64,000 bases of DNA from Macrostomum lignano. Its lineage: Eukaryota. Below the pieces are notes generated by a model. It worked only from the letters and a program-made list of their open reading frames with translations, was not told the DNA's origin and made no database searches. Where the stretch lies: the NCBI GenBank assembly GCA_002269645.1, contig NIVC01001283.1, forward strand, positions 248,001 through 312,000, written 5' to 3'. Shown here one piece after another: positions 9,001 to 61,140 of this stretch; within the stretch, counting starts at the first letter, position 1; every line of letters begins with the position of its first letter. Position numbers and translations under genes: made by a program.

Positions 9001-11580
9001 CATTTTTGGCCAAAAAGTAAATTGTATAGCTAGTATAAATCAAGGTATTGCACATGTATGATCAAGTATCAATATGAAAAGGCTCATTTTTTATAAGTTA
9101 GCCACCCCATGCTACACTAGTTGCTAGATCTTATTTGGTGATAGGCTATAGAAGTAAAGTAAGGTAAGTGCTAATAATAGTGCAACATTGGCTTTTGTTA
9201 TGATGCCATTGTTGACTGGCAAAACTTTATTAGAGATAAATATGCCTAGTACAATATCTCATCGATCATCCAATAGTATTTAGTAATATTAGTGGAGAAA
9301 TAGAAATAAATGAATCTTATTTGTTTCATTGAAAATAGGCCTGTCATTAACATATATACTAGCCTAGTGAATAAATAATAGTTGAACATAATACTAAGAA
9401 ATATATCATGATTCTCATTATTGACTATACAGCTATGGTGCTACTATATTTGATTTATTGTCATGTTTTCCTTGGTAAATGTGTGATCATTAATAGATAC
9501 CAAGTATAAATACATAGCTAGATAGCTTTAGAATCATGATATCAATAGTACAACTAGAAATTTGTTGAGAAAAGTAGATTCTGGAGGGTAAAAACTAGTA
9601 GCATAGCTAGAATGAGAAATACAGGGATATATCCCCCATATTGATGATTTATAGAAAGCTAAAAGATGTTTTTTTGAAAAAACAAAATAAAGTGGCTTTA
9701 GATTTAGAAAAAATACCCAAAATGATATAGTAAACATTCATAAATTATCATTAAAAAATTTTGAACAATATTTTCATGAATTCTAAGTTCTCAAAATGCC
9801 AGAGTTAGGATTTTTTATTTTAATAAAAATAAAGTTTCTGAGCTTATTAATAATGATATAAAATACTTTTCAATGTATAGTAGGCCTAACACAAAAATAC
9901 AAAACAAACTATTTTATGAGACTGTGACTTTGACCTTTTTCAATTATCTTCCCATTTCAAAATCCTAGCTATGCCACTAGTAAAGGCCCAAGGAGGGCAA
10001 AAGGAGTATGGCTCTATATTTTGACTAAAATTTGCTTGGTCTCCCCTTTGATTTTTTCTAGGTTCCACCTACTTGGCAACCTCCTGCCTTCCTAATTGCA
10101 TTATTGGATATTGATTATTTACCATTGGCTTGCCTTTGTTAATCTTTAAGATCTGTATACGCAAACCTCATCATCAAATGGACATAGTCATAGGCACACT
10201 ATAAAGCAAAATTTTTAGCTAGACCTATACATTTTACTAATAGATTTTCAATGGAATTTCAATAGTCAATTTTCAGTGTTAAATATTCAGTAGTTCTTCC
10301 AGAGAATATTTTTAAAAAGACTGTCAGTGTAAACTTTTCAAAATTAAGATCTAATATTCTTATCTCATGTTTTTAATATAAGTGTACCTGTCCCTGTCTG
10401 AACTCTGAATATCTATTTTTGCTGAAACCCACACATTGTTAGACTAGCAGTGTGTTTTAGGCAAACTGAAAAAAACGTCGTACAATAAATTTTTATTTAG
10501 TATTACTATACAATATACATAGTATTATTAGAGCGGCAAAATTATATCACTAAATCCGCGGCGATAATAAATAAAAAAACCTTAGCACTGTTTGCATTCG
10601 AAACATTAGCACTTGTTTTCTATGAACCTTTAGTAATTTTAAACAAAAAAAAATTGGTTACAAAGAAGAGCTTATGCGTATTTAGATTTAAATCGTATGG
10701 GGGTATTGAAAGCTACATTAAACCACAATTGTCTCATGGCGAGTAAAGCAAGGTGATTAGGACGGCGAAGGTGACTGCGATAGACGAAATGTAAATTAAA
10801 TTGTTTATTATCAAATAGATGTAGTATTAGGTGGTCAATATTACTGCCCCGAAGTTGTCCAAAGACTACCGCCTTTTACATTTTACAGACCCAGAAAGAA
10901 TCTTAAGGAAGCAACAGAATTTTTGCCAAACTGGCCTACTTCGCCGCGACCCTGCTGCACTGTCGTTGCCGTATTAGGCAATTCTTGCGGACCGAAATTA
11001 GACGAAACTATAGCTTCCACATTTCCATGGTTTTCACTGAATTATGGCCTGCATTGCACCAAGATCAGCTCTCTCCAAAGTTCTGGTCGCGTCACTGCTG
11101 CCCTGGGAAAGTTTTTCGACACGCTACTGTATTTGTGTGAAATAAGTGAAACTGAGGTTTTACGGGTGATACTGTACATTTACTATAATATGTGAAGGTA
11201 AGATAGAAATATACGTTAGACATGTATTTCTCCAGAAAGAATATAGGTACAATGCATGCACATTAGCCAGCATTTATCTTCTTAGCAGTTTTGTCATTAT
11301 ACCTACTAATAAAACATTATTCAGATAGGATCCGGCAGAAAAAAAGTTTTATATATAAAGACCATGACAGCGTCAATTTCGGATTGCTCTCCTAATCAAA
11401 TGCGGTTTTCGAAGATAAAATTTACTGATTTTTACACAGGTTTTCTTTCGGTATGTAGCTTAGCTAGATATATCAGGGTATGTGAGAGCCGAAAGAAGAG
11501 TCAATTGAAATGGTAAGTTTTTTTGGGACACGGCCGCTATACTGAGCATCAATCTACACTCGATATTACATGTATCTGGG

Positions 11581-11771
11581 CAAGGAGTTCTATAATTAGC
11601 AATCTGGAGTGGAAACGAGTTTTACCTCATGAGGCCACGCAAATTGTTAAGATAAGGAGCTAGCACTGAATGTCTATGGCTCCGTCGGACTCTGTCTATG
11701 CTACTCTGGCCTCATGAGGTATAAGTGAAAAACTCTTTTCCACTCCAGGTTGCTAATTATAGAACTCCTTG
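11581..11771. mobile_element. P-type MITE (CAAGG ends, 7-bp TSD)
   Basis: TIR CAAGGAGTTCTATAATTAGCAA.CTGGAGTGGAAA; ATCTGGG at 11574-11580 and 11772-11778. Confidence 0.75.
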
Positions 11772-11782
11772 ATCTGGGTTTA

Positions 11783-12105
11783 GACCATGGAGGAAAGAAT
11801 AGAATGGAGTGCTAATGTGAGCCAGTTATTTTTATCTCGCTCGATCTTCACTTTTAACATCCCTTTCCCCCGTTCTTTCCTATTGGCTCGTGACTGCCAT
11901 AGACAAAGTATTTTTCGTGTCGCTTTCGTTTTCGTTCCCCTCTGAAAGGTATGTCCCAGCATAGTACGAGCTCGCATCAAAATATGCTTTCAGCCAATAG
12001 GAAGGAACGGGGGGAAAGGGATGTTACGACGTAAAAGCGAAAATCGAGCGAGATAAAAATAACTGGCTCAGATTACCACTCCATTCTATTTTTTCCTCCA
12101 TGGTT
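11783..12105. mobile_element. TA-flanked MITE with about 110-bp TIRs
   Basis: RACCATGGAGGAAA.AATAGAATGGAGTG..TGAGCCAGTTATTTTTATCTCGCTCG inverted at both ends; an interior fragment recurs inverted at about 25866-25975. Confidence 0.75.
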
Positions 12106-13620: not shown

Positions 13621-13949
13621 AGCGCAGAAGAAACAAGTGTAAGAAAAATCAATTTTGAGCTTGCCTTTTCATTGTGCTCCGTTTTTATGTTCTACTGACT
13701 TTGGCACATAGATTATAGGTAATTTCTTTAAAAATTGAACTTGAGTTTGGCGTTCGGTGCTTGCCTAGACCACAGATTCTATAAACACTAGATGGCTCCT
13801 CACTCAGCGAAAAATCTTGCTCCCAAACAGATCGTCTATGGTTGGAATCGCTATTTTTAGCCCTAGTGTTAAACGCAGGCTTTTAATGTGTTCTATACTC
13901 TTCTACTTTGTTCTATTCTTCTAGCTATGGAAAGTGAAAGCGAGGCATT

Positions 13950-15536
13950 GGGCCGTATGAATAAAACGTGAGAAAATCTTTAAAGATTATCTTTCGAGCC
14001 AAGAATTTCTTTAAAGAAATTCTTTTCCGGCAAGAAAATCTGTTGGAGAAAATCTTACGAGTCAAGATATTCTAGAAAAGACATGAATAAAAGTTTCTCG
14101 GCTCGTGAGATTTTCTCGGCGACTGCCACTTGGCTGAAAGTTGTCTAGGGCCCAAACCAAGATGTCGGTGACGTGGAATCGACGGCCGTCTCCTCAGGCT
14201 TGGGCGCAGCCCATGCTGTGTCTATGGCTAAAACCACGTGAAGACCGAAAATCCGTCCAGAAAAATCCTACTAGAAAGTGGCAAAATCCATGTGGAGTTT
14301 ACCTGAACATCAGGTGACAGGAAAGTCACTTTGCTTTGAAATTTTACCCTGAGATTGAGCGTCCTGGCATCGAATGGTTGCCAATTTTTTACATGTATAT
14401 CGTGATTACTCTTTGCAGGAGCCCAGAAACAATGCAAAAAAAACTGCGAGCATGTTATAAGACGCTGCGTGAGGGGTAGAAATGGGAGCTGCCGTGTGTA
14501 CAAAACTGTGTCCTTGGACCGTTCGCAAGCTGAGCGACGTAAATAGCCTACCAGTGAAGTATGCTACCAGATTTCATTGAAACCGCGCAATCTTCTCTCG
14601 AGAAACATGTCTGCCGCATCGGATGCCGAGTCTGAAAGTCAACAGGAAGCCGAGGAGGAAGCCGACTACATTGTCAACGTACTCTCTAAGCACCCGGTTC
14701 TTTTATCAAAGAGTAGCACGCCCGTCGTGAAGAAGAAGAAGGAGGCGGCCATTGCAGCATTGTGCGCTGAGTTAGAAATGCTGACAGGAAAGCTGTTCGA
14801 GACCGGCAAAACATCGAAGAAGATCGCCAACATGAAGACGCGTATGAAGGGCAAGGTGGATCGAAATAGGACAGGGAATCGTCCCATAAAACTTCTTCCA
14901 TGGGAATCCAGGTTGGCCCGCATAATGGACGCGGATTCGAATCCAACAATGTCGCAAACTCCAGGGGCAAGTGCGGCTGGATTCCAAGCAAGTGCAACCG
15001 TCGTCTCGCCACAGCCAGCTGATGAGAGACGTTCACCCTCCGTGCAGCCTAAGGAACCAGCGAGGAAGCGTCGCATGTCTGGCGAGACAGAGGAGACGGA
15101 GAAGTTGGGCAACGCCGATTTGCAACGACTGGTGCTGCTGGAGCAGCTGCGCTACGTCAGACTGAACGTCAGTCAGATATGTCTCCACTGGAGTGGCCTG
15201 TCGGGGCAGGTACTCCTTGGTCTTTCTGATCTGAAGGAACATCTCGTGTCTCGTGTTATGGGCGCTGAAGATTCGCTTGAGCCAGAGAAAGAGTTGCTCG
15301 CATAAAACTCAAGTGTCGGCTCTCTCGGCGAGAAAATCACGTCTTTTATTCATCAGAAAGCAAGAAAATCTTTTCCTCGTGAGATTTTCTTGCCGAGCAA
15401 ATCTTTTCTTGTGAAAGCTCGAGATTTTCTTGGCGAGAAAATCTTGCAAGAAACTCGCAGTTTTTTATTCTTATAAACGCAAGAAATTCTTGGATTTCTT
15501 GCAAGAAAAAAATTTCTTTTTTTATTCATACGGCTC
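13950..15536 (+). mobile_element. Non-autonomous PIF/Harbinger element
   Basis: TIR GRGCCGTATGAATAAAA, 3-bp TSD ATT (13947-49, 15537-39), many subterminal AGAAAATC repeats. Confidence 0.85.
14607..15305 (+). CDS. Harbinger Myb/SANT-like DNA-binding protein
   Basis: Open 232-codon ORF with KKIANMKTR..TGNRPIKLLPWE and C-terminal LQRLVLLEQL; no transposase in the element. Confidence 0.7.
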   Translation: MSAASDAESESQQEAEEEADYIVNVLSKHPVLLSKSSTPVVKKKKEAAIAALCAELEMLTGKLFETGKTSKKIANMKTRMKGKVDRNRTGNRPIKLLPWESRLARIMDADSNPTMSQTPGASAAGFQASATVVSPQPADERRSPSVQPKEPARKRRMSGETEETEKLGNADLQRLVLLEQLRYVRLNVSQICLHWSGLSGQVLLGLSDLKEHLVSRVMGAEDSLEPEKELLA

Positions 15537-16150
15537 ATTTACCTCAAAATTGCCGAACTTTTTGCCATAACGTTTGATAGAAAAATCGGAAGATGTCTCA
15601 AATTTCACACTGTCCTTCGTTTAGATAAAAGCAGACATCTGTGAAAAGACGACATCAATAGGACCTGCTTGTCACACGTTATACCACAATTATCGGCACT
15701 TTAAAACAAAGGCATATCGTAAAGAAGTCTCTTAAAGTGCCGATAATTGTCGCATAAATTCTGATTGGAAAATCCTACTGCCTTCAGATTTTCACAACCT
15801 GGTGCCATCATTTGTGGAGGTGGCTGGGTAAAACTGGAAGCCTCTGAATTTGTTGAATCAAAATTTATAGCGAAATTTCGGCACTTTTGAGGCGAAAACA
15901 TTAAGCATTGAACAAATAGGAGATTTAAAGGCACTTTATTGTATACATTATATTTAAGATATATACTTTATATGGGTTGCAAAAATATTTAAGCAGAAAC
16001 CAAATTGTTTGGGCGATAAAGTTCATAATTTGCCCTGGCAACTCGCAACAGCGTATGCAGTAAGAAAGTGACACCCATTATTCGAAAAAAGTGAAAACAG
16101 AGATACGAGTAGGTAGGAAGAAGTGCACAACTATGAAGCAACGATGAGTA

Positions 16151-16777
16151 TTGGTTTTTGCATGCTAAGTGAGACATTTTTCAAGCAATCTAAGACTGAA
16201 TAGCAAAAACACTATTGTCTATGGCCACCCCTCGCTGCAGCCCAGCTTTTTGGGATCGCCTTGCAAGCAAAGTGAGAAATTTTTTCAAGCTAAGTGAGAA
16301 CCATATTGAAAACAAAAGCTGGGCTATGGCAAATCAACCACCAGGCATGACACGAGATGATTGGCGATACATGCTGATGGATCGGCTTGGAAGAGAATCG
16401 CTGCATGTCATTACTCCGCACAAGATCGCAGGCTGGGAGCTCCACTGCACTCGAAAGTTTGCTCAGTGTATCAACATGCAACCCTTTATTTGAACGCTTA
16501 TAACATTATCAACAATTTTTGTACCGCTTGTTTTGTTGTGTTCCTGCGTATCCTTTTCTAAATATATAGTTTCCGACAGTACATCATTTTGTAATTTCGT
16601 AAAACCACCCGTTTGTTTTCAATATGGTTCTCACTTAGCATGAAAAAATTTCTCACTTTGCTTGCAAGGCGATCCCAAAAAGCTGGGCTGCAGCGAGGGG
16701 TGGCCATAGACAATAGTGTTTTTGCTATTCAGTCTCAGATTGCTTAAAAAATGTCTCACTTAGCATGCAAAAACCAA
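16151..16777 (+). mobile_element. Internally deleted derivative of the Tc1-like element at 53033-54574
   Basis: Same about 170-bp TIR starting TTGGTTTTTGCATGCTAAG, TA flanks; MANQ fused directly to PPGMTRDDW. Confidence 0.9.
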
Positions 16778-16779
16778 TA

Positions 16780-17378
16780 TCGCTTTTGACGCTCTAGATA
16801 AGACTTTAGACATTCAAAATAAGACTGCATAGGATCGCATGCAAGGCCAGGCTAGCCACGGCCAGAGCATGCCCAGTCTTGGCTGCAGGAATGGCTTGGC
16901 CATAGACTAAAAAATGGAATATCAAAATGAGAATAAGACGCTCAATATGAGACTGAGTGTGAAAGCCTTCAGATATCGCTCTAACCCTCTGACCTTCAGC
17001 CAGCTCTCCTTCTTCACCCCTTGGGTTGCATCTGACCCCTTGGATTTCACTGTGATGGCACCATCGATTCCTGCAGCAGACCAGTAAACAATGGATCAAC
17101 CATCCTAGCTGCCGCTCAAATTCTGCTTCTTGTTTATTGCCTAATTTCTCCTTAGCTGTTTGTATGGTGACTGCCAAAAAGCAAATAAATTACGTTCACT
17201 CCCGGTCTCATATTGAGCGTCTTATTCTCATTTTGATATTCCATTTTTTAGTCTATGGCCAAGCCATTCCTGCAGCCAAGACTGGGCATGCTCTGGCCGT
17301 GGCTAGCCTGGCCTTGCTTGCGATCCTATGCAGTCTTATTTTGAATGTCTAAAGTCTTATCTAGAGCGTCAAAAGCGA
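16780..17378. mobile_element. TA-flanked MITE with about 175-bp near-perfect TIRs
   Basis: TCGCTTTTGACGCTCTAGATAAGAC.. inverted at both ends; shares the TA at 16778-79 with the adjacent element. Confidence 0.85.
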
Positions 17379-17682
17379 TACTTACAGGAGTTTAGTACGC
17401 CAATAACATGCTCGAAACAATGCATCTAACTATGCTTCCACTGTTGAAAAACTGCTTTGTGTCAAATTCTGTTTTTTATTGAGGAAATCGAGGTCTGTTT
17501 AGCTTAATTAAGTGTATGGCAGACAGCTGTTCTTATAAGACTTGCAGATTATGGCGCTGTGGTGTGAATTAGTTCAACCTTCTTAACTTACGCTTAGATG
17601 CGATCGCCGATCTAGAAGCATCGAATGCGCGTGTCTGGAGGCGACACCAATGGTGCAGCCGCAGACGAATGAAGCAGCAGAC

Positions 17683-18075
17683 TTACTCGAACACCTGGTC
17701 ACGGTGGATGTCGCACGCGGACATGTTGTCCGCCTCCTCATCACTCCGCAAGATGACAGACTCCAGATTCTCTGGCAGCAATCGAGGCATCACTAGCTGC
17801 AGATCGAGAGGAGCGTTCCACTTCAGCCGAGAGCCTGGTTCATGTCGCATGGCAGCTGGGCAAGAGCACGCCTCTTCCACAAAATGATCGCTGCACACTT
17901 TTAAGTCTCTGCATCGAATTTCCTCGAGCGGGAACGGCAGCTCCAGAATCTGCATCCATCGCGTAGCGGTTGCCGTATCTTGAGGAAATCGGTGCAGCTT
18001 GATAGGGGTGTTTTGAGGCGGAGAGGTAACTGCCTTATTTTTGCAGCCTGCAGCACAGCAGATTTTTGAGTTCAT
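17683..18075 (-). CDS. THAP zinc-finger domain ORF (TE-derived, truncated)
   Basis: CCAAGC..LHRFP..RW..VCSDHF: C2CH THAP signature. Confidence 0.8.
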   Translation of the reverse strand: MNSKICCAAGCKNKAVTSPPQNTPIKLHRFPQDTATATRWMQILELPFPLEEIRCRDLKVCSDHFVEEACSCPAAMRHEPGSRLKWNAPLDLQLVMPRLLPENLESVILRSDEEADNMSACDIHRDQVFE

Positions 18076-18469
18076 TACCAGAAGCTTGTTGGTCTTCGCC
18101 TTCGGTGTTCAGTGTCAAATATATAATTCTATCTAGTTGTTGCAGGAGAAAGAACTGGGTGTGCTAGAATCAGTGAGAGAAAAGTTTTTTTGCTGGCTCT
18201 ACGCTAGTTATAAGCTGCTGGCGCGGGGGGCGAAGTCTCGCGAGCGAGGGATTCCAACCATAGACAGTGAGAATTTGGCCTCCACTGAAGGAATGGAGAG
18301 TGAGCCATCTAGTGTTTATAGAATCTGTGGCCTAGACTAGAGTAGCCTAGATTCTTCTCCTTAGTTAGGACCATAGATAAAAAAACACTAGATGGATCCT
18401 CGCCTATTTCATGAATATGCTACTTTCAATTGGGCGTCTGTATAGAGTTTTTTGGATATATTTTTGCAT

Positions 18470-18900
18470 CTAGTGAAGTGTTAATTTTATATTTAGATTA
18501 TGATGCAGAATGCAGATTAAAAAGTGCACGTGCACCAGTGAACCACTTTTTGCTAACACGTAGCCAGCAACATATTCCATGGCTTCGATTGATGCGTCAG
18601 GAGAAGCAAACGACTGCAAACTGCATTGGAGCCCCTCATCTGTGCGTGTCGTCGGCACGGTTTCAGAAAAAGATGCGCTTGATCCAGCTGGTAAATTTGG
18701 CGCTTGAGTAATGCATGCTGCTGTGACGCCAGCAGAGCAGTAGTCGCTGCTGCAATTCCCAGTTTTTTACTCGGGTTTCATTATGCCACTCGCAGAAATC
18801 GATCGAAGGGCACCAAATAGAGGCTGGAAGTTCTGGCTTTTCATTGAACCTGTAGAGGGTGCTACAACTAAGAACAAAAGGCAGATAATTGCAGTGGAAC
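18470..18900 (-). pseudogene. P-element/THAP9-like transposase C-terminal fragment
   Basis: ASIEAMEYVAGYVLAKS resembles the conserved YIAGY segment. Confidence 0.45.
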
Positions 18901-19670
18901 GAAGGGGTGAAGCTAGCGGTAGGGAATGCCGCTCTGGCTTCTTAGCTTAGCGCTGACGAACTGTATTTGATCATTAACCTCTGCCATAGACAATAGAAGC
19001 ATACTTAGTGTTGTAGTGTTGTAGTGTTATATTAAAACGCATAGTGCTATAACTACCCCCTCCCAAAAGGAAGATAACTAGATGTGCATCGGTTCGGTAC
19101 AGTAACATTATGAAAACGGCATCATGCACAAACAAGAACATGTTCGTAGTGTCCGTAGGGACACACGTACGAGCAACATAAATATATAAACTAATTGAAC
19201 GTACATATAGCTATTGCAAACCCCAGACGCAAAAGTACAAGCATAGACAGCTCCAGAACAATGACTACGCTGTGCATTTCATCACTAATCTTTATCCATG
19301 TTCTTGGCTGCGGGCCGTCACCTTGCTACTCTGGGGCTATTTCATAGCTAGCGTCGCTATCTTCATCTTCCAAGCTCATATTGTTGCTGATTTGTAGGTT
19401 AGAGAGCGATGGTAATCCTTTAGCAGACATGAGAGGACTTCCAAAGATGAATTCTTTGCTCACCAGTCACTTTTTATGCCATAGACTGGGGGCAGCAGTT
19501 GTCTCGAGTGTAGCGCTCTGCCACTGTGAGTTAAGCCAACTGCTGCTAAGCTCAAACTGACTGCAAAAAGCTATAATACATCCTTTTTGTAAGCAGATGC
19601 CATATTGCTTAAGTAAATTAAATAGGAGCTACTTTTGGCTTCGAAAACTGAGAAGTAAAATAACTTTAAT

Positions 19671-19900
19671 TTATATTTGTACGGCACGCCAGTCGGCAAA
19701 ACAGGGGGCTGCGCACAGTCCAGGGTTGCCTTCACATGAGCCACAGCATAAGACGGTTTTCTTGGCCTGGCCGTTCCTGTAGCTCTGTCTGCACCGCTTC
19801 GTTGGTCGGGCCTGCGCTTCGGTGGCTTCAATGCGCTTCAGCGAGTGCTGTTGGCGAGCCACTGCTAACTGCTGCTGTGCCCGAGCAGCTCGTATACGAC
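19671..19900 (-). pseudogene. piggyBac C-terminal cysteine-rich domain fragment
   Basis: ARPTKRCRQSYRNGQAKKTVLCCGSCEGNPGLCAAPCFADW, homologous to the CRD at about 34560-34720. Confidence 0.75.
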
Positions 19901-20207
19901 CTGGTCCCGAGGAGTCGATTGAGTTTTTGAAACTAAAAACTCGAGTGTACCTCAGCAAGATCGGTACACAATCCATCCGTTTCTGGCCAGCACAGGAACA
20001 AGATGATAGAACACTACAGGAATTCAATTTAGACTCTCTTTCATATTCAACCGAGTCCTTTCGATTCAGTCAGGCAAAATTGTCTATGGATTTTCTCTCT
20101 TTATTTTTCCACTTGCAGAACCATTAGAGGAAATTCTAAACAGACACAAGACAATCAAAATAAACACTTTCAAACTGAAACGGTAAACATTAGGACAGTC
20201 TCAGCAC

Positions 20208-21306
20208 TCAGCAGGAACCTACAACGCTGCAACCTGCAACGCTACAGTACACGCATCTGCGGCAAATCAACCATCTAAAATAGCTTGTCGAACAAAGTAT
20301 CTTTGCACGTAGGTGAAAATGTGGTTGAACCACGCGTTGCACTTGTCCGCAGTCACGCAGTGTGCCGTCTGCTGTATCATGGCCACGAGGGTCTCCTTGA
20401 GATGAGCAGTCGCCTGATCGTGGCAGAATCTGGCATCTCGTAGTACTCGGCGTCGTTGTGGGAGCTAACCTTGTCGATGACAATGTGGCACTGCGATCAT
20501 GGGAACTCCGATTGGATGTGCAAAAATTCTCCAAATCACTCCTTAGTCATCCCCCTGTTGTACGTCTGATAATGCACAATGCCGACCGCAGGGCAGACTG
20601 CGACACGCACAGTCACGCGGAGCCGCTTCTGCGAGCCGACCTGCCTGTAGACGCGCTCTCCACGTTGGGATCGTCGCTGCGATCGGCGCATCCACGTATC
20701 GAAGTCGAATTCGTCGATGAAAATCTTGTGCACAGCAAAAACCTCAGCCGAACAGATCCATTCACAGAAGTCCACTCGTTCTTGAATTACGTGTGGCGAG
20801 ATGCGTCCCGCAGGCAGGTCCCTGGCTAGCTTGGTGGTGTAAAGAGCCCCATTCAACTTGGCACTCACGGTCTTGTCAGTGACGACCAGCTAAGCTGGCA
20901 GATGCTGGCGCAGAAGTGAGTTGAGTTGCTTCAGTTTAATCAGAGGATTGGCTTCCACCTGAGCACAAATGAACTCCTGCATCCCTGCGTCCCACTTGAT
21001 TCGCTTGGCACCTCCTTTAGGCAGCTTGTCCACTCTCTCGGATCTCACAATCGTGTGCGCAGTCGCGCGCTTGATGTTCAGCCAGAGCGACGAAGTCTTC
21101 CCCTTTTTCAGAGGTTTCAATGATCCGGCGTCCATCGGTGTCACCGATATTGTTGTACGTACGGGGCTGTTGACCCTCTGCGTCTTCTGAATTTTCATCT
21201 TTTTTATCCTGATCGTCCTCTCCTGTTCCTTCTTCGCCTTCCTCTTCAAACAGCTCATCTTGCACGTCTCGTCTTCTTTCATGTCTTCACTCCCGACCTC
21301 AGTCAT
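20208..21306 (-). pseudogene. Degenerate IS630/Tc1-like transposase (third family)
   Basis: HTH segment VEANPLIKLKQLNSLL, then KIFIDEFDFDTW.RRSQ..GERV and HIVIDKVSSH; multiple frameshifts; homologous to the 53-56 kb elements. Confidence 0.7.
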
Positions 21307-22149
21307 TGTGTTTGATTTGATAAGACGTCTGTCTCTTTCGGTTTTCTTCTTTTCACCTGAGTCGGTTATAAACTTGCATGTTTAGCCATAGACAATTTTG
21401 GCTGACTGAATCGAAAGGGTTCTCTTGAATATGAAAGGGAGAGTCTTAATTGAATTTCTGCAAGTACTGTATTTCATAGACAGTGTCTGAATTGCTGTTT
21501 CGATTGTTTGAATTAAAAGTGTGCTTGGTCAAAATAAGCGGTAAAACGGTGTATACAGCTGCTTTGCGCTTCAATGGTCTTGGTCTGTGCGCCTAGCCCA
21601 GCAGCTATACATAAATCCTACAATGTTACCAGGTTATCCCAAAATTAAGTTTCGGTCACAAAAACTGTTATGATTGACGCTCAAGGCTCCAAGGTCTGTT
21701 CAATTATTGATTTGTGCTCAGAGGCACGATTTTTTGCGCGTTTATTGGGTGCGCCTCACAGCGTCTTAATTGTTGTTTCTTTTTGGGCACTGGGCTCTTT
21801 CTATGAGTATTTAATCTGCTTCACAGCAAGTACAGGCGGGGCTCGCATCTATCATTGTCTATGTTGCATACAAAAAATAAATATATACAAAGTACGAACA
21901 AAATGAGTCTGCTTGGGCCGAGCCCACAGCACCTCCCTTTCTTTATGAAAGTCCATAATGTTCACATGCACAGCACTGTTCACTCCTTGTACAACACTTT
22001 AGGCTCCAGCAGCAATCTCTCGCTCCGCCGAAGTTGCACCGCCTCTGAAGTGCCCCCCAGAACTTTGATGTTCTCCGGGTTCATTGGGTGGAGACTCAGA
22101 GACCTCGTCCCGCAGGCCTCTCTGGGTCCGGGTCCTGCTCGTTAGTTCC

Positions 22150-24539: not shown

Positions 24540-24768
24540 TGAAGAAATCTGTATCGCTTAACAACGTAGATGTCAATGATCCTCTGCAGTTCTCGTGCAG
24601 CTTCTCCTGCTTGTCCTCAAGCTGCCAGAACCAGTGCAACGCGGCCTGCTTTACATCTTCATGGTTTGCGAAACTACTCTTGTAAAAGTCAGTCTTCAGC
24701 CATTTGAACAGAAATCTGTCGCACAAGTTAAAGCCCGGGCTGTAGGCATTCTGCCAAAGCAGATTCAC
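24540..24768 (-). pseudogene. mariner-like transposase C-terminal fragment
   Basis: AYSPGFNLCDRFLFKWLK..F..HEDVKQAALHWF (degenerate YSPDL motif). Confidence 0.6.
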
Positions 24769-37640: not shown

Positions 37641-37642
37641 GT

Positions 37643-37900: not shown

Positions 37901-37934
37901 GCAAACCTGCTGAGAAGAAAAGCGCAATTCTTCT

Positions 37935-47800: not shown

Positions 47801-49913
47801 GAGGCAGTAGGAGATAGAGGACGCTACCCGGCATGTCGCAGCACGCGGCGCGGGACAGAGAGGCAGTGTGTAAGTCACCCCCACAAGGAGAGCTGCCCTG
47901 GCAGGAGGCGCGGGACAGAGAGGCGGTGAATCACACCCCACGGAGAGAGCCGTACAGCGAGCTTCCCCACCCGAGTCCGGTAAATATTACAGAGTATTAC
48001 GTGCACACGCCAGCCCTGAATACCAAGCCATACTAGTCTACCTGCAGTGCTCCCAGAGGGAAGGGATGGTCAGGAGTTACACACCAAGAATGCATTCATA
48101 CAAAGAGTACACAACTCGAGCCCAGACACCAAGTCACAGTCTACTTACAGTAGAGATGGTAGATTAATAGCAAGATTATATTACAATTAGACCTCCCTAG
48201 CACATGAGGAGTGAAATTCAATAATAATTGAATTCAATAATAATACAACATTTAGACGTAGTAATTTAATTACAAAATACCACTAACACTGAGCCAACGA
48301 ATTGTAGGTTACAAAGGAGTTGCCACTCATATGGAAAGCCAGTATAATGCAGGTGTATATTATTAAAACATAGACAAAAACGATGCAGACGTATATACAC
48401 ACTATTGATTTTGTACATGTACATTTCGGCATATTACCACACATCGCAGGCACATATTATATATCGGGGATAGGTTAAAATACACACATCGTAGATGTAG
48501 AAGCAGACACAATGCAGGAAAATTATGATACGAGTGTACATATTAGTGCGTAAAAGTATCATATTATGACACCCTGTAGCACATATTGACATAATGCAGG
48601 GGAAAATATTGACAGAAATAGTACACAATTGTAGAGGTAACAACCCGCCAACTAGTAAGGACATCCAGCACTTGTTCAGGTTTTTATTATTTCGAGACGA
48701 GTGTCATGCCCCCGCAAGAGATCTTATCAGAAATTTGTTGAACTCCACTGCAACTCTCCCCAGAGCCTCCAAATGTGAGTTTTTAACCCAGGGTCGAGTA
48801 CAAAGGACCCGCCCACTCTTAACCCCAAGGGGTGATCGTAGCGGAGACCAAGTACAGTGCGGACGGAGAGGGGTAACAGAAAGCGCTACATCAGACCGTA
48901 GGGCTGCATTCCTCCCCCGAGGTAGGCGCGTCAGCTCCCACTCCTCATTTAACCATCAAGTAAACTAAAGAAGTCAAGCAGAAAGCCTTACAATCACCCG
49001 CAACCAGCACAAGTAAGAGTACTTTCCACTAGAGAGCCATAGTGCAAGATTCGCGAGCCAAGTTGAAGAAGCACACCAAATTACACTAAAGACATATGTA
49101 TTAAAAAGCATACCGGCACCTCTACAAAAACACAGTATGTACCGATTAAAGTTGCTTTTGGTGCAGTGTATTTAATAAAAAGCAGGTACCTAACACAAAA
49201 GTAGGCATCAATGCAGTGCACGGGCTAAACTGTATTTACAAACGCAGGGCAACGAACTACACACAATGTAGCGCATAGACATAATTGTACGCATAAATGT
49301 ACGCAATTTCCGGTATATAGGACCAAATGTACACAATGTACACAAACACACACACACACACTCAGGCGTATTCACAGCAAGAGCTTCCTGCCGATGGCGC
49401 CATCGCCTGCGGCGATCGGTGCTGCAGGATGCGCTGCAGGATGCGCCTGAGTGTCCACACAGGACACACATATCGGGAGAGTGTACACTCGGGGCGCCTG
49501 CTGCATACATATCGGTGTACATATAGGGAGAGTGCGCATACATATCGGGAGGGGCGCCTGAGGCGGGGAGGGCGCCTGCGGCATACATGTCGGGGGAGGG
49601 CGCGTGCGGTGGGGAGGGGCGCCTGCGGCATGGACGCCTGCTGCTCTGGAGGGTGCGCTTGGGATCTGATTGATTTGGGATCTGATTGATTTGGGATCTG
49701 ATTGATTTGGGATCTGATTGATTTATTGGGATCTAATATCGGGAGGGTGCGCCTGCGGCGCTTGGCGCCACGCGCCTGCGGCGCGCGCGCGCCGAGCGCC
49801 GATATCGATACGGGTATCGATCACCTAGTGATCGGGGCGCCAGCCAATGAGAGGCGAGGAGGGTTGACACCCACCCCCCTCCAAAATCAACACATACGGG
49901 TTCATATAGTAGT
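44820..49913. mobile_element. Non-autonomous Maverick/Polinton-like element
   Basis: About 450-bp near-perfect TIRs (44820-45269; 49464-49913), ends ACTACT..AGTAGT, 6-bp TSD GAAGTT (44814-19, 49914-19); no recognisable ORF inside. Confidence 0.65.
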
Positions 49914-50890: not shown

Positions 50891-53021
50891 TTGTCCCATG
50901 ACTGAGCGTGCGTTTTTGGTCCAAAAAGCGTGCATTAATCTTACAGCCCAACCCTATGCGGCGTAGCCAAAAAAGCGTGCAGATAATGAAAAAAGCGTGC
51001 AGATAATGAAAAAAGCGTGCAGATAATGAAAAAGCGTGCAGATAATAGCGTACAGCGCCACAAAAAACAGCAGTTTGCAAGTGTGAGTTTTGGTGTTCGT
51101 TGTGTTGGCTGTTTTGGGGGTTGGCCTGCGCTGGGAGGTTGGGCACGCTTTTATTCACCTGAACCTATATTGATCGGAATGTACGCGCGTACATAGTGAA
51201 TGACAAATATATATATATATCGACTAACTTGGCCTTTGAGCCCTCGTACTGATTTTCTCGCAATTCTGGTCTTACACAAGCAACGTTTATTAAAACAAAG
51301 GGGAAAAACACAGCAAAATTTAACACCGATGCACAGAAACAAAAAGTCAGCAGTAAAACAGATGACAGCAGAAAGGTCGACGAAGATCTTAGATGCGTCC
51401 AAACGTGCAGCCGGTGACGTGACCACTGAAATTAAATACAACCTGTGGTACAGGCCCAATAGTATTGGTGGTTGGGGGCTCCGCGATCACACGAGCAGCA
51501 GGATCGTCCGTATTCGCCACGGCCCGTCGCGGGACCTTGCACAGAAGCGCCAAAACCTCCTTATCGACGCAGGCCACCTGGTTCGCGTGCATCACCGTGT
51601 TCAACGACGAGCACATGTCCTGCATCTCGCCAACGCGGCGTGACCCGAATCAAAGGTACCGCTCGACAGAGGCCGTGGCCTTGTGCCCCGTGACCTTGCA
51701 AATGTCGGATACTGAATGGCCGGCCACGGAGAGCTCCTTGATGACGGTGGACCGAACGCAGTGCGCAGTGTAGCGCCGGCTCAAGCTGGCTGCCTCGCAA
51801 ATGCGTGGGAAGAGCTCGGCAAAGCCATTAACGCCAATAGGCTGCTTGGGCGAAAACCACGTCCCCTTCTCGAAACCACTAACCTTCGGCTTCAGGAAGA
51901 ACGCCACGTCATCGGACGCCTTTTCGCCACAAGATGAAGAGCTAGGAATTGACGCACTTCTCTTCAGGAGGTAAAGTCGGAGGCACTCGACCGGGCACTT
52001 CACAGGAGACTCGGTCATCACAGCCTCCTTGACATTGTCGCTAGCGGCACGGCCCAAGTCCCTGGCGACATTCTTCACCCGCTTCTCTCGAAGGCGAACG
52101 ATCTCGCGACCGTCGGGGGCCTTGTCGAACTCGAAGCTGTCCACCCGCAAATCCCTCAACCACTCTCGACCACGGGTGCCGAAGTAGAAGACGACGTTGT
52201 AGTACGTCTCATGCAGAAGGCGAGTGGGAGTGCTCCGGTCGAAGTAGTCACCCAGTTTCTGTAGGTCCGATGGCTCCATAGCCTGGAAGTGGTCCACGCG
52301 GCCACCGCGGGCAAAGAAAAGACGCCCACCGGCCTTCAGCATTTGATTTGCAGAGTAGAATCGACCATCGGAAATGATGTTGATGCCCCGGTTCTTCATC
52401 AGGTAGCGGAACAAGGCAGCGCGAATGCACACGAGGCTGCTAGGAGCATACGGCTGGCCATCAGTCTTGCGAAGAGTGCCGTAAAAGTAGCGCAGGCCAA
52501 CGCTCAGCTCCTCAGGTTGCGAGGTGTCCAAATCGACGCGCAGGTGCGGATACTTGGCCAAGAAATCGCGAAATTTCGCGACGTATTGAGCCTCATGCTT
52601 CTTAGACGATTTACATCGGTCTCTTGCTCCAGCGCCCGGATTGATGCGTCAAGGTCGATCGAGGCCAAGTCGTCGTTCAAATCAAGGATGGAGTCGAATA
52701 GGCGGTTCAGCTCCTCGTTGTCGTCCACACTAGTTGCTTGGAGACGTAACTGCTCGTCCACAAGCTTCTCAACGTCGGCCCACTCAAAATGGTGGGAGAT
52801 CTCACCGGCCGTCATGCCGCTTCTCATGCCGTTAGGAAATAATGAATCCATATGGGGCCAAACTCACGATCAGAAGCTTGTGCATAGCAAGAAATTGTCT
52901 ATGGTCACTAAGAAAATGTCTATGGTAGGAACTCCTAGCTGCAGGAACAAAAAGCGTGCAGATAATAAAGTACAGTGCTGTGACAAAGAATTTTTTCAAC
53001 GCACGCTCAGTCATGGGACAA
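50891..53021 (-). mobile_element. Crypton (DUF3504 tyrosine recombinase) element with TIRs, near complete
   Basis: TIR TTGTCCCATGACTGAGCGTGCGTT with TA flanks; recombinase motifs RGRE, HCVR, TGH, ERY; frameshift at about 52612 and in-frame TGA at 51650-52; restored ORF 52851-51389. Confidence 0.85.
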
Positions 53022-53032
53022 TATGCCTACTA

Positions 53033-54574
53033 TTGGTTTTTGCATGCTAAGTGAGACATTTTTCAAGCAATCTGAGACTGAATAGCAAAAACACTATTGT
53101 CTATGGCCACCCCTCGCTGCAGCCCAGCTTTTTGGGCGCGCCTTGCAAGTAAAGTGAGACATTTTTTTCAAGCTAAGTGAGAACCATATTGAAAAAAGGG
53201 GTGGTTTTACGAAATTACAAAATGATGTACTGTCGGAAACTATATATTTAGAAAAGGATACGCAGGAACACAACAAAACAAGCGGTACAAAAATTGTTGA
53301 TAATGTTATAAGCGTTCAAATAAAGGGTTGCATGTTGATACACTGAGCAAACTTTCGAGTGCAGTGGAGCTCCCAGCCTGCGATCTTGTGCGGAGTAATG
53401 ACATGCAGCGATTCTCTTCCAAGCCGATCCATCAGCATGTATCGCCAATCATCTCGTGTCATGCCTGGTGGGCAACCGTTTTCCTCAGCCACGATTGCGG
53501 GCTCTACAAGGCGACGCTTAATCTCACTCTTAAGAACGTTGTGCGCCATGCCATCTCCACGGGATTCAAAAACGGCGAGTACGCCGGTAAGATTTGCAGA
53601 CGAATGAGATCCTCAAACTGCTCAGGTATCTCAATCCCTTGGTGAAAATTTGGACCATCGAAAATGAGAATAACTCGTCTGCCAGGAGCATCGGCCTGTA
53701 TGATGTTAGCCAGTTCCAAAATAAACTGCTGAAATCTCTCTCGTGTTTGACCACCTCGCTGCAGCGTACAGTGGACAAGACCCAGTTCAGATGACACTGC
53801 TAAGCACATCGTCATGTTGGGACCCCTCTGCGTTACCACCGTTCGTCGCACAGGCTGGCCAACTCTTGCTCGACCCTGCGTCCTTCTCGTCCATAGGTTG
53901 TAGCCAGTCTCATCGATAAACACAGCCAGGTCATTCACAGGCAGTCCCGTCATCATCATAGCATAGTCGCGCCTCGCTTGTATCACATCCTGTGTATTCG
54001 CAGCAAGCCTCACGTCGGCATCCTTGGTGGCGACTTTCAGTGAGATAAGCATGGAGCTCATCGCTCTAGCAATGGTGGATTCAGAGATAGCCGGCTTTTG
54101 TGGCAACTCCAAAGTTAGTTTTCTCTGCACATCCGTCAGAGTAACATAGGGATTTTGCTCAACTATCTGCTCAACGGCGTTCCGCATTTCAGCATCCATT
54201 TTTGTTGACCCCGGCTTGCGGCCACCGCGTTGCAACGCATGGAATTCACCAGTAGCTGCGTAGCGACTCCATATCCGATAGGCCGTCTTCTTGTTCAGAT
54301 TAAGGATTTTGGACGCAGTCGAAATTGAGTAACCATCTTCGACGGCATTGACCAGGCGCTCTCTATCCTCGTTGCTTGTTAGACGCAGTTGATTTGCCAT
54401 AGCCCAGCCTTTGTTTTCAACATGGTTCTCACTTAGCTTTAAAAATTTCTCACTTTGCTTGCAAGGCGATCCCAAAAAGCTGGGCTGCAGCGAGGGGTGG
54501 CCATAGACAATAGTGTTTTTGCTATTCAGTCTCAGATTGCTTGAAAAATGTCTCACTTAGCATGCAAAAACCAA
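53033..54574 (-). mobile_element. IS630/Tc1-like transposon A (DD33E)
   Basis: TA TSD, about 170-bp TIRs, ORF 54400-53316 with FIDETG, IFDGPNFH, YSPFLNPVE; 5-bp duplication frameshift at 53545-53554. Confidence 0.92.
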
Positions 54575-54641
54575 TACTAGGCTTACTCGTGCGATAATAG
54601 TCTATGGCACTCGTGCGCTTCGCGCACTCGAGCCAAGACTA

Positions 54642-56229
54642 TTGGTTTTTGCGAGCTATCTCAGCCAAGGAGCAAGCAAACTCATCCATCCCATAGATTT
54701 CAATACGACGAAGGAGGTGGTTTGAACCATAGACTATCACGTTTTTTCAACCAAACTCATCCAACGGGCGAGCAATTTCAGCCATAGCTTGTTTATTAAG
54801 CGAAAAATTTAATTGGTTCGTATATAAGAGACTTTATGATAGAGCAGCACATCAGAACACAGGAAATTGACTAACGGAACAAACAAATGACTCACTAAAT
54901 AAGCACTGGTTGCATCTGATGCACGGTGTCAATTTGTCAGCTAGTCTCATTAGACAAAGGGCTGCTGCTGGATGCACTGAGCATAATTTCTGCCGCAATG
55001 AATTTCCCAGCGAGCCACCTTCAGTGGTGTCACCGTGTCCAAGGCAATGCGGCCAAGTCGCTCCAACAGAATACAGCGCCACTCGGTACGGTTCATTCCA
55101 TCCGGAATTCCACCAGCTTCCTCTTCCACCAGGGCAGGATTGACCAGCTGCCGTCTGATGTCAGCCTTCACCGCGCTATGCGCCATTTCGCATGGGTTTA
55201 GGAACGGCGAATAGGCAGGAAGCAGCTGCAGTGAAATCCTCGGCTGATGATTCTGTGGCACGATGACTCCACGGTGGAAGGTCGGCCCGTCACAGACAAT
55301 TACAATTCTCGCATTGTTAACCTGGCCTTGGACTTGCTCCACTAGCTCGTTTACAAACTGTTGAAACCGCGGCCGCGTTTGGCCTCCTCGGAAGATCTCA
55401 CTCTTGACCAAACCCAGCGCAGAGGAGACGGCAAGGCAAATGGTCAAATTTGGTCCTCTCTGAGTGGTGCAGATGCGACGCACAGGCTGACCTCTGATTG
55501 CTCGGCCTTGTGACCTTCGGCTCCACAAGTTATATCCAGTCTCATCGATGTACACCACCACGGCATCGTGTGGCAGCGTCGTCATCATCTGGGCATAGTC
55601 GCGTCGTCGGGCAAGCACTTCATCCGAGTTGGCTTGCAGGCGAATGTCCGCGTCCTTAGTCGCAATTTTGAATGTGTACAGAGAGCCCTGCAGTGCTCTG
55701 TGCACAGTCGTGGTCGACACCACGGGTTTGTTTGGCAGTCTTTCGTGCAGCTGCTGACACATGGTCTCGAGTGTTGCAAACGGATTGGCATCCACAATGC
55801 GAGTCAACTCTTGGCGCATTTCTGCGTCAATCTTGCTTGATTCCTCCCGTATTCCGCCACGTTGGAGAGCAGCAATTCTTCCAGTAGCTACGTAAGTCCG
55901 AATTATATGTCTGGACGTCTTCAGCTTTATCCCGAGAATGCGTGAAGCAGTGCTCAAATTTTGTCCGTCATTCCGGCCATGCGTTGATTAGCTTCTCTCT
56001 GTCGGAGTTGGATGTTTGTCGCAACTGAGCCATCGGAGGAGGAGGAAAGAAAGAAGGGAAGAGGAAATGAATGGGCAGACAAGCTATGGCTGAGATTGCT
56101 CGCCCGTTGGATGAGTTTGGTTGAAAAAACGTGATAGTCTATGGTTCAAACCACCTCCTTCGTCGTATTGAAATCTATGGGATGGATGAGTTTGCTTGCT
56201 CCTTGGCTGAGATAGCTCGCAAAAACCAA
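54642..56229 (-). mobile_element. IS630/Tc1-like transposon B (DD33E)
   Basis: TA TSD, about 150-bp TIRs also starting TTGGTTTTTGC; ORF 56033-54950 with a +1 frameshift near 55976; YIDETG, VCDGPTFH, YSPFLNPCE. Confidence 0.92.
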
Positions 56230-57308
56230 TATTATCGCACTCGAAAGCCTAGTAGTAATCTAAATATACTAAATCTCTAATATTTGTTTGTTTGTATGCT
56301 TGTCCATAATCTTACATTAACTATGTTTAAGAGAGTCGAGCTCTACTGGCTCAAGCAGCCGTTAGCTGCCTACACAGCCATAGACAAAAATGAACTGAAT
56401 TACGCTCGAAAATACAAGTGAAGCTCGCAATAAGTTTGCTGTGCTCAACCCACAGCAAAAAGCTTGGTGACCGGAGGGGGTTGGTGGATTCTAAAAATCG
56501 GACTCAGATTTTCATCCTTATTGGCACTCTATACTTGGCGACCTCAATACTCTTTGGACAAGAGCCAGAGTGAATGGCGCTGTGTCGTTTCTGTTGGGAG
56601 AGCGAAACCCCTATATATCGTTCCAGAGCCGCGCTGCTGTGCCCAGTGACACGTGCAATATCTGCACGCTGTACTCCCGCCTCATTAAGTGTAGTCGCAC
56701 ACGTCTTGTGCAGGCTAGCGGCCTGTCGGCTCCTAGGACGCCCGTAGCCCATAGCTTGTCTTCGACACTTGACGGGATCGGCTCAGCCCACCGGAGTCCA
56801 GAGCCCTTGCCGTCGCGCGTGCTAAAATTCATAGAGGCATCCAAAGCGCGTCTAGAGTCAGCAAACTCCTGGTCCCTTCACAGGCTCCACGTCTGCTTGC
56901 ACTGATTCACGATATAATACTGAATCATGCTGAAGAAATCCTTTAGCGACGAGGCAGAATAGCGTTCACCATTCTTATTACGCACTTTCAACATGAAGAA
57001 TCGCAGGACATAGTTTAGATCACTCTTGCTCATGTCTTTAAGATCTTTCAGAACCATCAAGTTCATCACACTCCCATTTGCCTAATGCTGCTTCTTCAGT
57101 GCATGCCAGGCACTGAAGGTGTTGACCATCTGTAGAAAAGTCAATGCCGCGATATTGTGCTAGGCAGGCATGAAAAATAACTCAAGGCCCGCTTGCACTT
57201 AGCAGGGCCGACTTATATATTTGGCTATGACTAATTGCGTAATAAATCAATTATTGAAGTGGTTGGCTGTACGTACTTGTACGGGGCAGTGATAGCGCCG
57301 GACCAAGT

Positions 57309-58987: not shown

Positions 58988-59371
58988 ACACAGAGCTCAC
59001 AGTTCACAGAGCTCACAGTTCACAGAGCTCACAGTTCACAGAGCTCACAGTTCACAGAGCTCACAGTTCACAGATCTCACAGTTCACAGAGCTCACAGTT
59101 CACAGATCTCACAGTTCACAGATCTCACAGTTCACAGAGCTCACAGTTCACAGATCTCACAGTTCACAGATCTCACAGTTCACAGAGCTCACAGTTCACA
59201 GATCTCACAGTTCACAGAGCTCACAGTTCACAGATCTCACAGTTCACAGAGCTCACAGAGCTCACAGTTCACAGAGCTCACAGTTCACAGAGCTCACAGA
59301 GCTCACAGTTCACAGATCTCACAGTTCACAGAGCTCACAGTTCACAGATCTCACAGTTCACAGAGCTCACA
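58988..59371. repeat. 16-bp minisatellite CACAGA(G/T)CTCACAGTT
   Basis: About 24 tandem units. Confidence 0.95.
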
Positions 59372-60028
59372 GTATCGTGTCCATATAAACGCACAGTAGA
59401 ACTCTCAACTCAGGGAGTGAAAGTGAACTGGGCTTCGCGGCTCAAAAACAATGCTTAAAACTTGGTCAAAACTCTCCAATACTGTCAGCTGCTACTGCAG
59501 TGGGCGGAGCTGGCCGAAAATGTGTCCCCTTATCCCCTAATGGTAAATAATTCAATGGGAGCTTGCTTCATTGATTTGCTCACCCTCTGTCTCTCACTCT
59601 ATTCCTCTCTGAAGTGGCGATTTATTGTCGCTATTGGCGCTTAGTTGGCGCCGTAGAACTGCCTGCCTGACGAGTTCTGTGCAGACACGTTCGTAGGCGT
59701 CCTTGCCTATTTGCTATATACAGATATAGTTGGTAGCATAGAGTTTTATGTGTTGCTAAGCTAGACCGCCGATTACGTAATAATATTAGTGAATTGCACA
59801 ATGCAGCTCAAGTATATGGTCCGGTCTAATTGTCTGTGTGTTTTTTTCTTTTTACCAATTCATTTCTGCAAGTCTGAATTGAGTCGCTTTCTGTAAACTT
59901 GGACAATTTTAATTATCTCAGCAATGCATTTGGCATGCTTAAGTAGCGATATATTTCTTGGCATGTGGCTAATATTATTTGATAATATTACTCATAAACT
60001 TTTTCCGAATTCGTCCGAATAAGCAGAC

Positions 60029-60535
60029 CAAAGAGTATTGAGGTCGCCTATAGTATAGAGTGCCAATAAGGATGAAAATCTGAGGCCGATTTTTAGAATC
60101 CACCCACCCCTCCGGTCACCAAGCTTTTTAGTCTATGGCACAAGTTGTGGCTAGAATGGTGTACAAAGCCGATGCTCAGAAATATAAGACATTTCACACT
60201 TAGAAAATGCATGTATCAAATAAGCAAGACAACATCGCTCAGTCACCAGACTCAGTTGCCGTCGTCGATACACAACTCCGTAACAGCCATGCCATATAGC
60301 CCTTACGTCTGAACAACAACAGCCATGCCACTAAAGTCCAGCTACATTAGCTACTTGTATTTTTCTCATGCACTCTATGCATATTTCTGAGCATCGGCTT
60401 GTACACCATTCTAGCCACAACTTGTGCCATAGACTAAAAAGCTTGGTGACCGGAGGGGGTGGGTGGATTCTAAAAATCGGCTTCAGATTTTCATCCTTTT
60501 TGGCACTCTATACTAGGCGACCTCAATACTCTTTG
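60029..60535. mobile_element. Intact P-type MITE
   Basis: About 155-bp TIRs starting CAAAGAG; 8-bp TSD AAGCAGAC (60021-28, 60536-43). Confidence 0.9.
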
Positions 60536-61140
60536 AAGCAGACGTTTTCCTGTCCTCAATTTCGCTGCATTTAATGCCTATTAATATATATACATATATA
60601 TATCATTCTTCAAGCCAAGAGCCCGCATCGGTGCCAGTGTTGGGCTGCTAAGGCCAAATAGACAAAGCAGCGCGTGCTGGCTGCGAGCCAGCGAATCTAA
60701 GGCCGGGGGGGGGAGAGAAGGGGAGAGAGTGAGGAGAGAGCGGGGGCAGTCAGTCGGGTGTGAGGAAGGAGAAGAGAAACAGGCCATCCGCTGCATTTCT
60801 ATTTCTAGGAAAGCCTACACGGCCTCTACGGTTTTCAATGCAGCAAAACTTCCCCCGTGGCTTCCCACGCTCCCTTCTGCAGCTCTCCGCCTGAGCAGCC
60901 AGCTTCTGCATTGAGTAGGAACACCAGACCAGGGAGAGTTGCTTCTCTGACGCACCTGGCAATTACGCAACAATCGGTGGAACACAAGCAGCTCGAGTAA
61001 GGAGAGGCAATTCCGCCAGAGCAAACAGCACTATTTGCTCCTGCTACTGCCTGCCGCTGCTCAGAGCGTTCGCCAGGCTGGATTCCTGACTCACCCCCGG
61101 GCGTTGGCACACGCAGCCAGGCTGACAGCTGCACCGCATC

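Follow-up and report, generated by a model that had tools for sequence, protein, structure and literature searches.

Why should a long tract of unrelated, broken transposable elements (TEs) lie almost entirely on one strand? The question is raised by a 64,000-nucleotide stretch of the flatworm Macrostomum lignano (contig NIVC01001283.1, positions 248,001 to 312,000; hereafter the window), in which a block of TE remnants lies between two host genes on the left and satellite DNA on the right. A first-pass annotation had proposed that this block is a uni-strand cluster producing PIWI-interacting RNAs (piRNAs). In our analysis a one-directional piRNA cluster on the plus strand is the best reading of the block, and a tentative one, in which doubt slightly outweighs confidence.

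The description from which that proposal started, a dense multi-family set of damaged and almost entirely co-oriented TEs with mostly one copy per family, agrees with what Pfam, protein searches and codon usage found. In about 45 kb, with the block itself at about 18-58 kb, there are at least 17 coding remnants, partly nested, together with miniature inverted-repeat transposable elements (MITEs). The remnants represent five or more superfamilies: Crypton, Tc1/mariner, piggyBac, Gypsy and one that is THAP/P-like.

Every stop-to-stop open reading frame (ORF) of at least 60 amino acids (aa) on both strands was scanned against Pfam, and the transposon domains were all found on the minus strand: THAP, zf-Tnp_2 (twice), rve, RVT_1 (twice), DUF7041, DDE_Tnp_1_7, DUF3504 (twice), QRICH1 (twice), Phage_integrase, HTH_32, Transposase_1 and DDE_3 (twice). 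THAP was placed at 17.8-18.1 kb, the second RVT_1 fragment at 38.0 kb, the Crypton-type DUF3504, QRICH1 and Phage_integrase at 42.3, 51.7-52.6 and 57.0 kb, the mariner HTH_32 and Transposase_1 at 42.8-43.4 kb and both Tc1-type DDE_3 domains at 53.5-56.0 kb. From 6.6 to 61 kb the plus strand gave no transposon domain by Pfam, only an ERERER low-complexity match. The window was also searched by tblastn with its own TE proteins and with six M. lignano Crypton proteins, and its ORFs were compared all against all by blastp. The only tblastn matches off the minus strand came from a Tc1 deletion derivative (16.2-16.5 kb) and from reading through terminal inverted repeats (TIRs). To the minus strand these protein searches added Crypton pieces at 23.1, 32.3-33.7, 37.7, 39.9-41.0 and 41.4-41.8 kb, a third Tc1 (20.0-21.4 kb) and a second piggyBac C-terminus.

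Since Pfam was blind to one real plus-strand ORF (the Myb-like ORF described below), we added a homology-free test, a log-likelihood ratio (LLR) of codon usage. Leave-one-out trials of this test ended in the true frame 10 times out of 11, and in the remaining trial the reference frame had itself been a guess. At L001, an independent M. lignano locus, the test found the called genes of either strand again, and 3 ORFs in 21.6 kb were discordant. In the block 24 minus-strand ORFs exceed an LLR of 8, versus 4 plus-strand ORFs; without the training ORFs the numbers are 17 and 3, and three is within the L001 false-positive rate.

From these searches the coding remnants amount to 17 firm and 5 weak calls on the minus strand and 2 firm calls on the plus strand (the Myb-like ORF and the Tc1 deletion derivative). 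The first-pass annotation had counted about 26 minus-strand coding remnants; the co-orientation itself stands by Pfam, tblastn and the codon test. All calls with an orientation between 17.7 and 57.1 kb are minus-strand. For the firm calls (17 versus 2) the two-sided binomial test gives p = 7e-4, for the firm calls without an ambiguous composite element (16 versus 1) p = 3e-4, and for firm and weak calls together (22 versus 2) p = 4e-5. The elements to the right of the composite element are listed here (LTR, long terminal repeat; TSD, target-site duplication; RT, reverse transcriptase).

18400 to 19210, minus strand: P-element-like C-terminal remnant, weak (motif EAMEYVAGYV; Tnp_P_element_C E 0.04, below the Pfam cut-off).
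19686 to 19904, minus strand: piggyBac C-terminal zinc-finger fragment (tblastn E 2e-19 to the 34.5-kb copy; zf-Tnp_2 E 0.007).
20034 to 21441, minus strand: Tc1-like element 3, a degraded ORF (56-nt TIRs, pair I12; tblastn E 5e-18).
23102 to 23627, minus strand: Crypton C-terminal fragment (tblastn to P0002, E 6e-11; codon LLR 19).
24454 to 24780, minus strand: possible mariner C-terminal fragment, weak (by eye; codon LLR 9.1; no Pfam match).
27796 to 30953, minus strand: Gypsy-type LTR element, internally deleted (171-bp LTRs 96.5% identical).
31084 to 31914, minus strand: second Myb/SANT-like remnant, weak (Myb_DNA-bind_5 E 0.017; codon LLR about 8).
32303 to 33737, minus strand: Crypton-derived pieces (blastp paralogy with the 40-42 kb Cryptons, E 3e-10 to 2e-9; tblastn).
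34111 to 36683, minus strand: near-complete piggyBac (DDE_Tnp_1_7 E 1e-60; zf-Tnp_2 E 1e-7).
37400 to 37642, minus strand: possible mariner C-terminal fragment, weak (YSPDLAP motif; no Pfam match).
37688 to 37963, minus strand: Crypton tyrosine-recombinase C-terminal fragment (tblastn E 2e-6; blastp E 2e-14 to 40152-40448).
37938 to 38888, minus strand: 5' part of a second Gypsy-type element (RVT_1 E 1e-4; zf-CCHC E 0.02).
39937 to 40956, minus strand: Crypton, internally deleted (tblastn to P0001, P0002, P0003 and P0006, E about 1e-10).
41372 to 41761, minus strand: Crypton N-terminal part (tblastn E 2e-6; paralogy).
42238 to 42411, minus strand: Crypton DUF3504 fragment (DUF3504 E 3.5e-6).
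42756 to 43451, minus strand: mariner-type transposase remnant (HTH_32 E 9e-5; Transposase_1 E 7e-4).
44820 to 49913, no strand: young non-coding element without a superfamily label (450-bp TIRs 99% identical; 6-bp TSD GAAGTT).
51392 to 52863, minus strand: best-preserved Crypton, with QRICH1-like, DUF3504 and tyrosine-recombinase regions (Pfam, tblastn).
53022 to 54585, minus strand: Tc1-like element 1, with one frameshift near the C-terminus (DDE_3 and HTH domains; TIRs 93-96% identical).
54640 to 56231, minus strand: Tc1-like element 2, with a damaged N-terminus (DDE_3 E 6e-37; TIRs 99% identical; TA flanks).
56564 to 57081, minus strand: Crypton fragment (QRICH1 E 1e-5; tblastn E 3e-4).
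60029 to 60535, no strand: MITE with two inverted arms (8-bp TSD AAGCAGAC).

A shared orientation could arise trivially if one insertion had been copied along the locus, and the first-pass annotation had named local duplication as a possible explanation. The check was run by self-BLAST and by the all-against-all ORF comparison. Self-BLAST returned only TIRs, LTRs and small MITE copies; since no coding segment is duplicated and paralogues within the window share only 30-57% protein identity, local duplication is excluded. Moreover the elements have their own termini, with LTRs 96.5% identical at 27796 and 30953 and TIR pairs 93-99% identical in the three Tc1s, the piggyBac and MITEs, and TSDs of TA, 6, 7 and 8 bp were found. 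Reading frames are broken by frameshifts or truncations in all remnants. Most elements are therefore independent insertions of different ages, and several of the damaged ones are young.

Cryptons provide eight of the firm minus-strand calls. The assignment of the copy at 51.4-52.9 kb comes from Phage_integrase, DUF3504 and QRICH1 together, the other copies being fragments matched by tblastn. Its reading frame is broken into three ORFs; the 332-aa ORF at 51653-52648 (minus strand) is 99% identical to the M. lignano protein A0A1I8GNC8 (UniRef), and its other homologues, likewise from M. lignano, carry DUF3504 and Phage_integrase, which identifies the window as genomic DNA of this free-living flatworm. 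At 32303-33737 an N-terminal acidic region is fused to a C-terminal tail and a second tail fragment is present, and the fragment at 42238-42411 is counted as a separate copy because it is not collinear with its neighbours. It was also observed that at 33306-33737 and 39937-40956 the DUF3504 middle is missing and the acidic N-terminal region runs almost straight into the C-terminal part or tail, which suggests that these apparent internal-deletion derivatives are non-autonomous Cryptons.

Among the other families, the Gypsy-type element at 27796-30953 reads on the minus strand in the order gag-like, RT, integrase (DUF7041 E 2e-15, RVT_1 E 6e-10, rve E 1e-10), with integrase and RT at 29.0-29.6 kb and the gag-like DUF7041 at 30.5 kb, while the second, consisting of a zinc knuckle, a protease motif and the start of RT, is truncated by a Crypton. 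The piggyBac at 34111-36683 has a 603-aa ORF with one frameshift before the zinc finger and TIRs of about 57 nt (pairs I1 and I2); its DDE domain is complete (34.9-36.0 kb), and piggyBac zinc fingers occur at 19.7 and 34.6 kb. Tc1 elements 2 and 1 share 54% aa identity. Other family labels of the first-pass annotation fared less well. One of the three mariners is supported by Pfam, but two were seen only by eye or motif; for three P elements we found a THAP domain and one weak Tnp_P_element_C match (E 0.04), but not the further fragments; and nothing in the PDB matched the putative mariner and P fragments by sequence. The three Harbinger elements were not confirmed, as neither Pfam nor a motif search found DDE_Tnp_4 and only Myb-like ORFs are there.

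The 5.1-kb element at 44820-49913 has a 16-bp tandem repeat inside its TIRs and no coding orientation, and its interior is strongly enriched in purines on the plus strand (GC skew +0.16, AT skew +0.18). Single arms of the MITE family at 60029-60535 are found at 44.5, 50.6 and 56.5 kb, in both orientations.

What, however, of the plus strand? Its two firm calls belong to the following features.

13760 to 18340, no strand: composite element with 39-nt TIRs (pair I18), orientation ambiguous.
14607 to 15302, plus strand: Myb/SANT-like ORF (MADF / Myb_DNA-bind_5 type) of 232 aa, the main plus-strand exception (codon LLR 29).
16147 to 16779, plus strand: deletion derivative of Tc1-like element 1 (a MITE), the second plus-strand exception (TIRs 98% identical, TA flanks).

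In the composite element a THAP ORF (minus strand, 17686-18108; Pfam THAP E 1e-9) and the Myb-like ORF are convergent, and two MITEs are nested, one of them being the plus-strand Tc1 derivative. As both exceptions lie within 13760-18340, they are confined to this left-most element. The Myb ORF of the first-pass annotation is real: a full HMMER scan of 1.84 billion representatives gave 424 homologues at E up to 1e-3, the closest of which (P0009) is 99% identical, and its relatives carry MADF or Myb_DNA-bind_5 and a conserved C-terminal motif, ETEKL..LQRLVLLEQL. A word-indexed search with concatenated ORFs had missed this family, which the single-ORF HMMER scan found, so that nulls of concatenated queries are not to be trusted; searches with concatenated ORFs (1380 aa from the plus strand, 1468 aa from the minus strand) gave no matches, being insensitive and uninformative for either strand. 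The THAP and Myb-like composite may be a two-gene transposon family; a recognisable transposase core is absent from 13760-18340.

The Tc1 derivative likewise holds on the plus strand, by self-BLAST and tblastn. Two more plus-strand exceptions had been proposed and were not recovered. For the hammerhead, Rfam gave no match, whether the gathering score was applied or E was relaxed to 1, and a regular-expression search gave a single candidate with a poor helix II; for the short interspersed nuclear element (SINE) no tRNA-like sequence was found, and the repeat family of about 200 bp is present in both orientations. An imperfect hairpin at 15640-15796 matches the mir-9261 model weakly (35 bits versus a gathering score of 86) and is probably a small palindromic repeat.

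The flanks of the block hold the following features.

1575 to 3839, minus strand: GH99 endo-alpha-mannosidase-like exons, the left host gene, outside the block (Pfam Glyco_hydro_99, E 6e-107).
7310 to 8248, minus strand: host-like ORF nearest to the block, 312 aa (ORF list; codon LLR 23.5).
8300 to 11500, no strand: AT-rich spacer between this ORF and the block (GC 0.31-0.37; composition, sequence read).
61747 to 64000, no strand: right flank, with three different 22-bp satellites and no supported gene (Tandem Repeats Finder, TRF; Pfam; codon LLR).

The left 8 kb of the window thus contain two host genes, both on the minus strand. The 312-aa ORF has a hydrophobic anchor at its N-terminus and no match in the Pfam scan, and its start codon faces the block, so that a plus-strand transcript of the block, if any, would diverge from it. 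The spacer, about 3 kb without ORF, Pfam or codon signal, is the only place in the window that could hold a putative plus-strand promoter. The first-pass annotation had placed the block between two apparently divergent host genes: the left gene is indeed on the minus strand, but a right-hand gene at 61 kb is not supported, the plus strand there having no Pfam match or codon signal and 61.7-64 kb being 22-bp satellite. What had been taken for this gene is probably the Ser-rich ORF at 61141-61734, where the plus strand shows no Pfam match or coding signal. The 22-bp satellites occupy 61829-62250, 62269-62436 and 62868-64000, the last array running past the end of the window, and satellite DNA adjoins the block; a 16-bp satellite was also seen at 58989-59373. 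Near the host genes, 6656-6838 (plus strand), just downstream of the 312-aa ORF, is an inverted partial copy of its 3' end at 7293-7411 (minus strand), with 75% nucleotide and 60% aa identity. Between the GH99 exons, a GC-rich 12-bp tandem array (CCTGCTGCCGCC) at 2100-2467 reads on the minus strand as a Gly/Ala/Arg-rich ORF.

How could a one-directional piRNA cluster account for the block? Transcription of a plus-strand precursor would start in the AT-rich region adjoining the divergent host ORF at 7.3-8.25 kb and run rightwards. Being antisense to every trapped element, this precursor would yield antisense primary piRNAs like those that Macpiwi1 binds. An insertion that happened to lie antisense to it would silence its own family and so be retained, and this retention would build up the strand bias; the transcript, its piRNAs and the selection are what we infer from the arrangement. 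In M. lignano the PIWI pathway works and 436 piRNA clusters have been described, some unidirectional and some bidirectional, with a median of 9.7 kb and a maximum of 93.7 kb, which cover 0.63% of the genome and account for 80% of the unique piRNAs (Zhou et al. 2015, RNA 21:1885; PMC4604429). The piRNAs bound by Macpiwi1 are predominantly antisense to TEs (PMC4604429), and sources with TEs antisense to the precursor are therefore required. The same study reports no orientation bias of TEs within clusters, and it lists its clusters by their positions on contigs of the 2015 draft, giving neither strand nor sequence (PMC4604429).

Several points weigh against a plus-strand cluster. The prior is low because clusters cover so little of the genome, and a plus-strand promoter is not identifiable within the window. 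Depletion of poly(A) hexamers was taken as a proxy for a long plus-strand transcript, and these hexamers are not depleted (47 observed versus about 38 expected), while 73 occur on the minus strand, in line with the elements having their own 3' ends there. The host genes are on the minus strand too, and the bias could thus be part of a broader strand effect. Finally, Cryptons make up 8 of the 17 firm minus-strand calls and integrate by site-specific recombination through a tyrosine recombinase, with short direct repeats as substrates (PMC3212892), so that their orientations may not be independent. With the eight Cryptons collapsed to one event the firm calls become 10 versus 2 (p = 0.04), and 9 versus 1 (p = 0.02) if the composite is also dropped; if Crypton orientations are not independent, the strand bias is only marginal (p about 0.02-0.04).

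This last point is the core of one alternative, namely that we are looking at an ordinary TE-rich, satellite-adjacent region without special function, where the bias comes from chance and non-independence: through site-specific recombination Cryptons may insert beside or into Cryptons already present, always in one orientation, and some elements of other families would share the strand by chance. Three Cryptons do lie within 2.5 kb (39.9-42.4 kb), the tyrosine recombinase with its direct-repeat substrates offers a route, the firm calls outside Cryptons are only 9 versus 2 (p = 0.065), and the non-coding MITE family has no orientation bias. However, firm and weak non-Crypton calls together still give 13 versus 2 (p = 0.007), and the codon-usage test, which is independent of family, gives the bias too. 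The Crypton copies come from families only 30-57% identical, a shared target sequence was not seen among them, and the solitary Crypton at L001 sits among host genes of the opposite strand; we regard this explanation as unlikely. A local segmental duplication or assembly artefact is scarcely credible, given that self-BLAST detects only TIRs, LTRs and small MITE copies, that coding remnants have no near-identical duplicates and that TSDs flank several elements.

TEs inside transcription units show an antisense bias, and the block could likewise lie in a long plus-strand host unit that makes no piRNAs (an intron, an untranslated region or a long non-coding RNA), where sense insertions are purged for their splice or poly(A) signals. 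This established bias, and the excess of poly(A) hexamers on the minus strand (73 versus 47), which fits elements harmful in sense, speak for such a unit, and its exons could sit beyond the window. The purging of sense insertions would produce the same kind of co-orientation. The first-pass annotation had itself named an intron of a plus-strand gene as an explanation, and here the answer is partial: within the window neither flank has plus-strand exon signal by Pfam or codon usage, the left flank being two minus-strand genes and the right flank satellite. In addition, 47 poly(A) hexamers are still present on the plus strand, and the bias is far stronger than usual, for the intronic TE biases known in other animals fall well short of about 90%, above all those of cut-and-paste elements. 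We consider that a host unit of this kind probably does not explain the block. Less probable still is a larger-scale effect, such as a co-directional gene block or replication direction, that would place host and TE coding sequence alike on the minus strand. The GH99-like gene and the 312-aa ORF do agree in strand with the TEs, but two host genes have no statistical weight, M. lignano locus L001 mixes strands, and we know of no mechanism that orients eukaryotic cut-and-paste, LTR and tyrosine-recombinase elements together. Our slightly doubting preference for a plus-strand piRNA cluster results from weighing its low prior against two facts: chance explains the bias poorly, and ordinary intronic selection seldom reaches it.

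Unidirectional clusters of M. lignano, from the same species, are TE-rich and 10-94 kb long, some of them one-strand (PMC4604429). With about 40-49 kb the block, whose membership is putative, would be among the largest compared with the median of 9.7 kb. It also resembles flamenco of Drosophila melanogaster, which has dense, nested fragments of many families, nearly all in one orientation, a protein-coding gene at one end and satellite or heterochromatin nearby. In flamenco the fragments are antisense to a single long precursor; for the block such a precursor is putative. Furthermore flamenco is a somatic uni-strand cluster dominated by Gypsy-type LTR retroelements, while the block, in another phylum, consists mostly of DNA transposons (Crypton, Tc1/mariner, piggyBac) and has no more than two Gypsy pieces. 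It is possible, though rather doubtful, that the block is a flamenco-like master locus of the flatworm, where one long plus-strand precursor traps mainly cut-and-paste transposons and Cryptons rather than LTR retroelements, with orientation-selected retention as in Drosophila, and which possibly feeds Macpiwi1 in the germline and neoblasts.

If the cluster reading is wrong, the locus raises the question whether Cryptons insert in a fixed relative orientation. If it is right, the locus would at best stand out chiefly by how large it is and how strongly its elements are co-oriented, one-directional clusters being already described in M. lignano. It would mean that orientation-selected trapping in a one-strand piRNA source, an architecture best known from Drosophila flamenco, exists also in a lophotrochozoan and that it works on DNA transposons and Cryptons too, and it would provide a defined locus for studying how the PIWI proteins of flatworm stem cells and germline acquire their guides.

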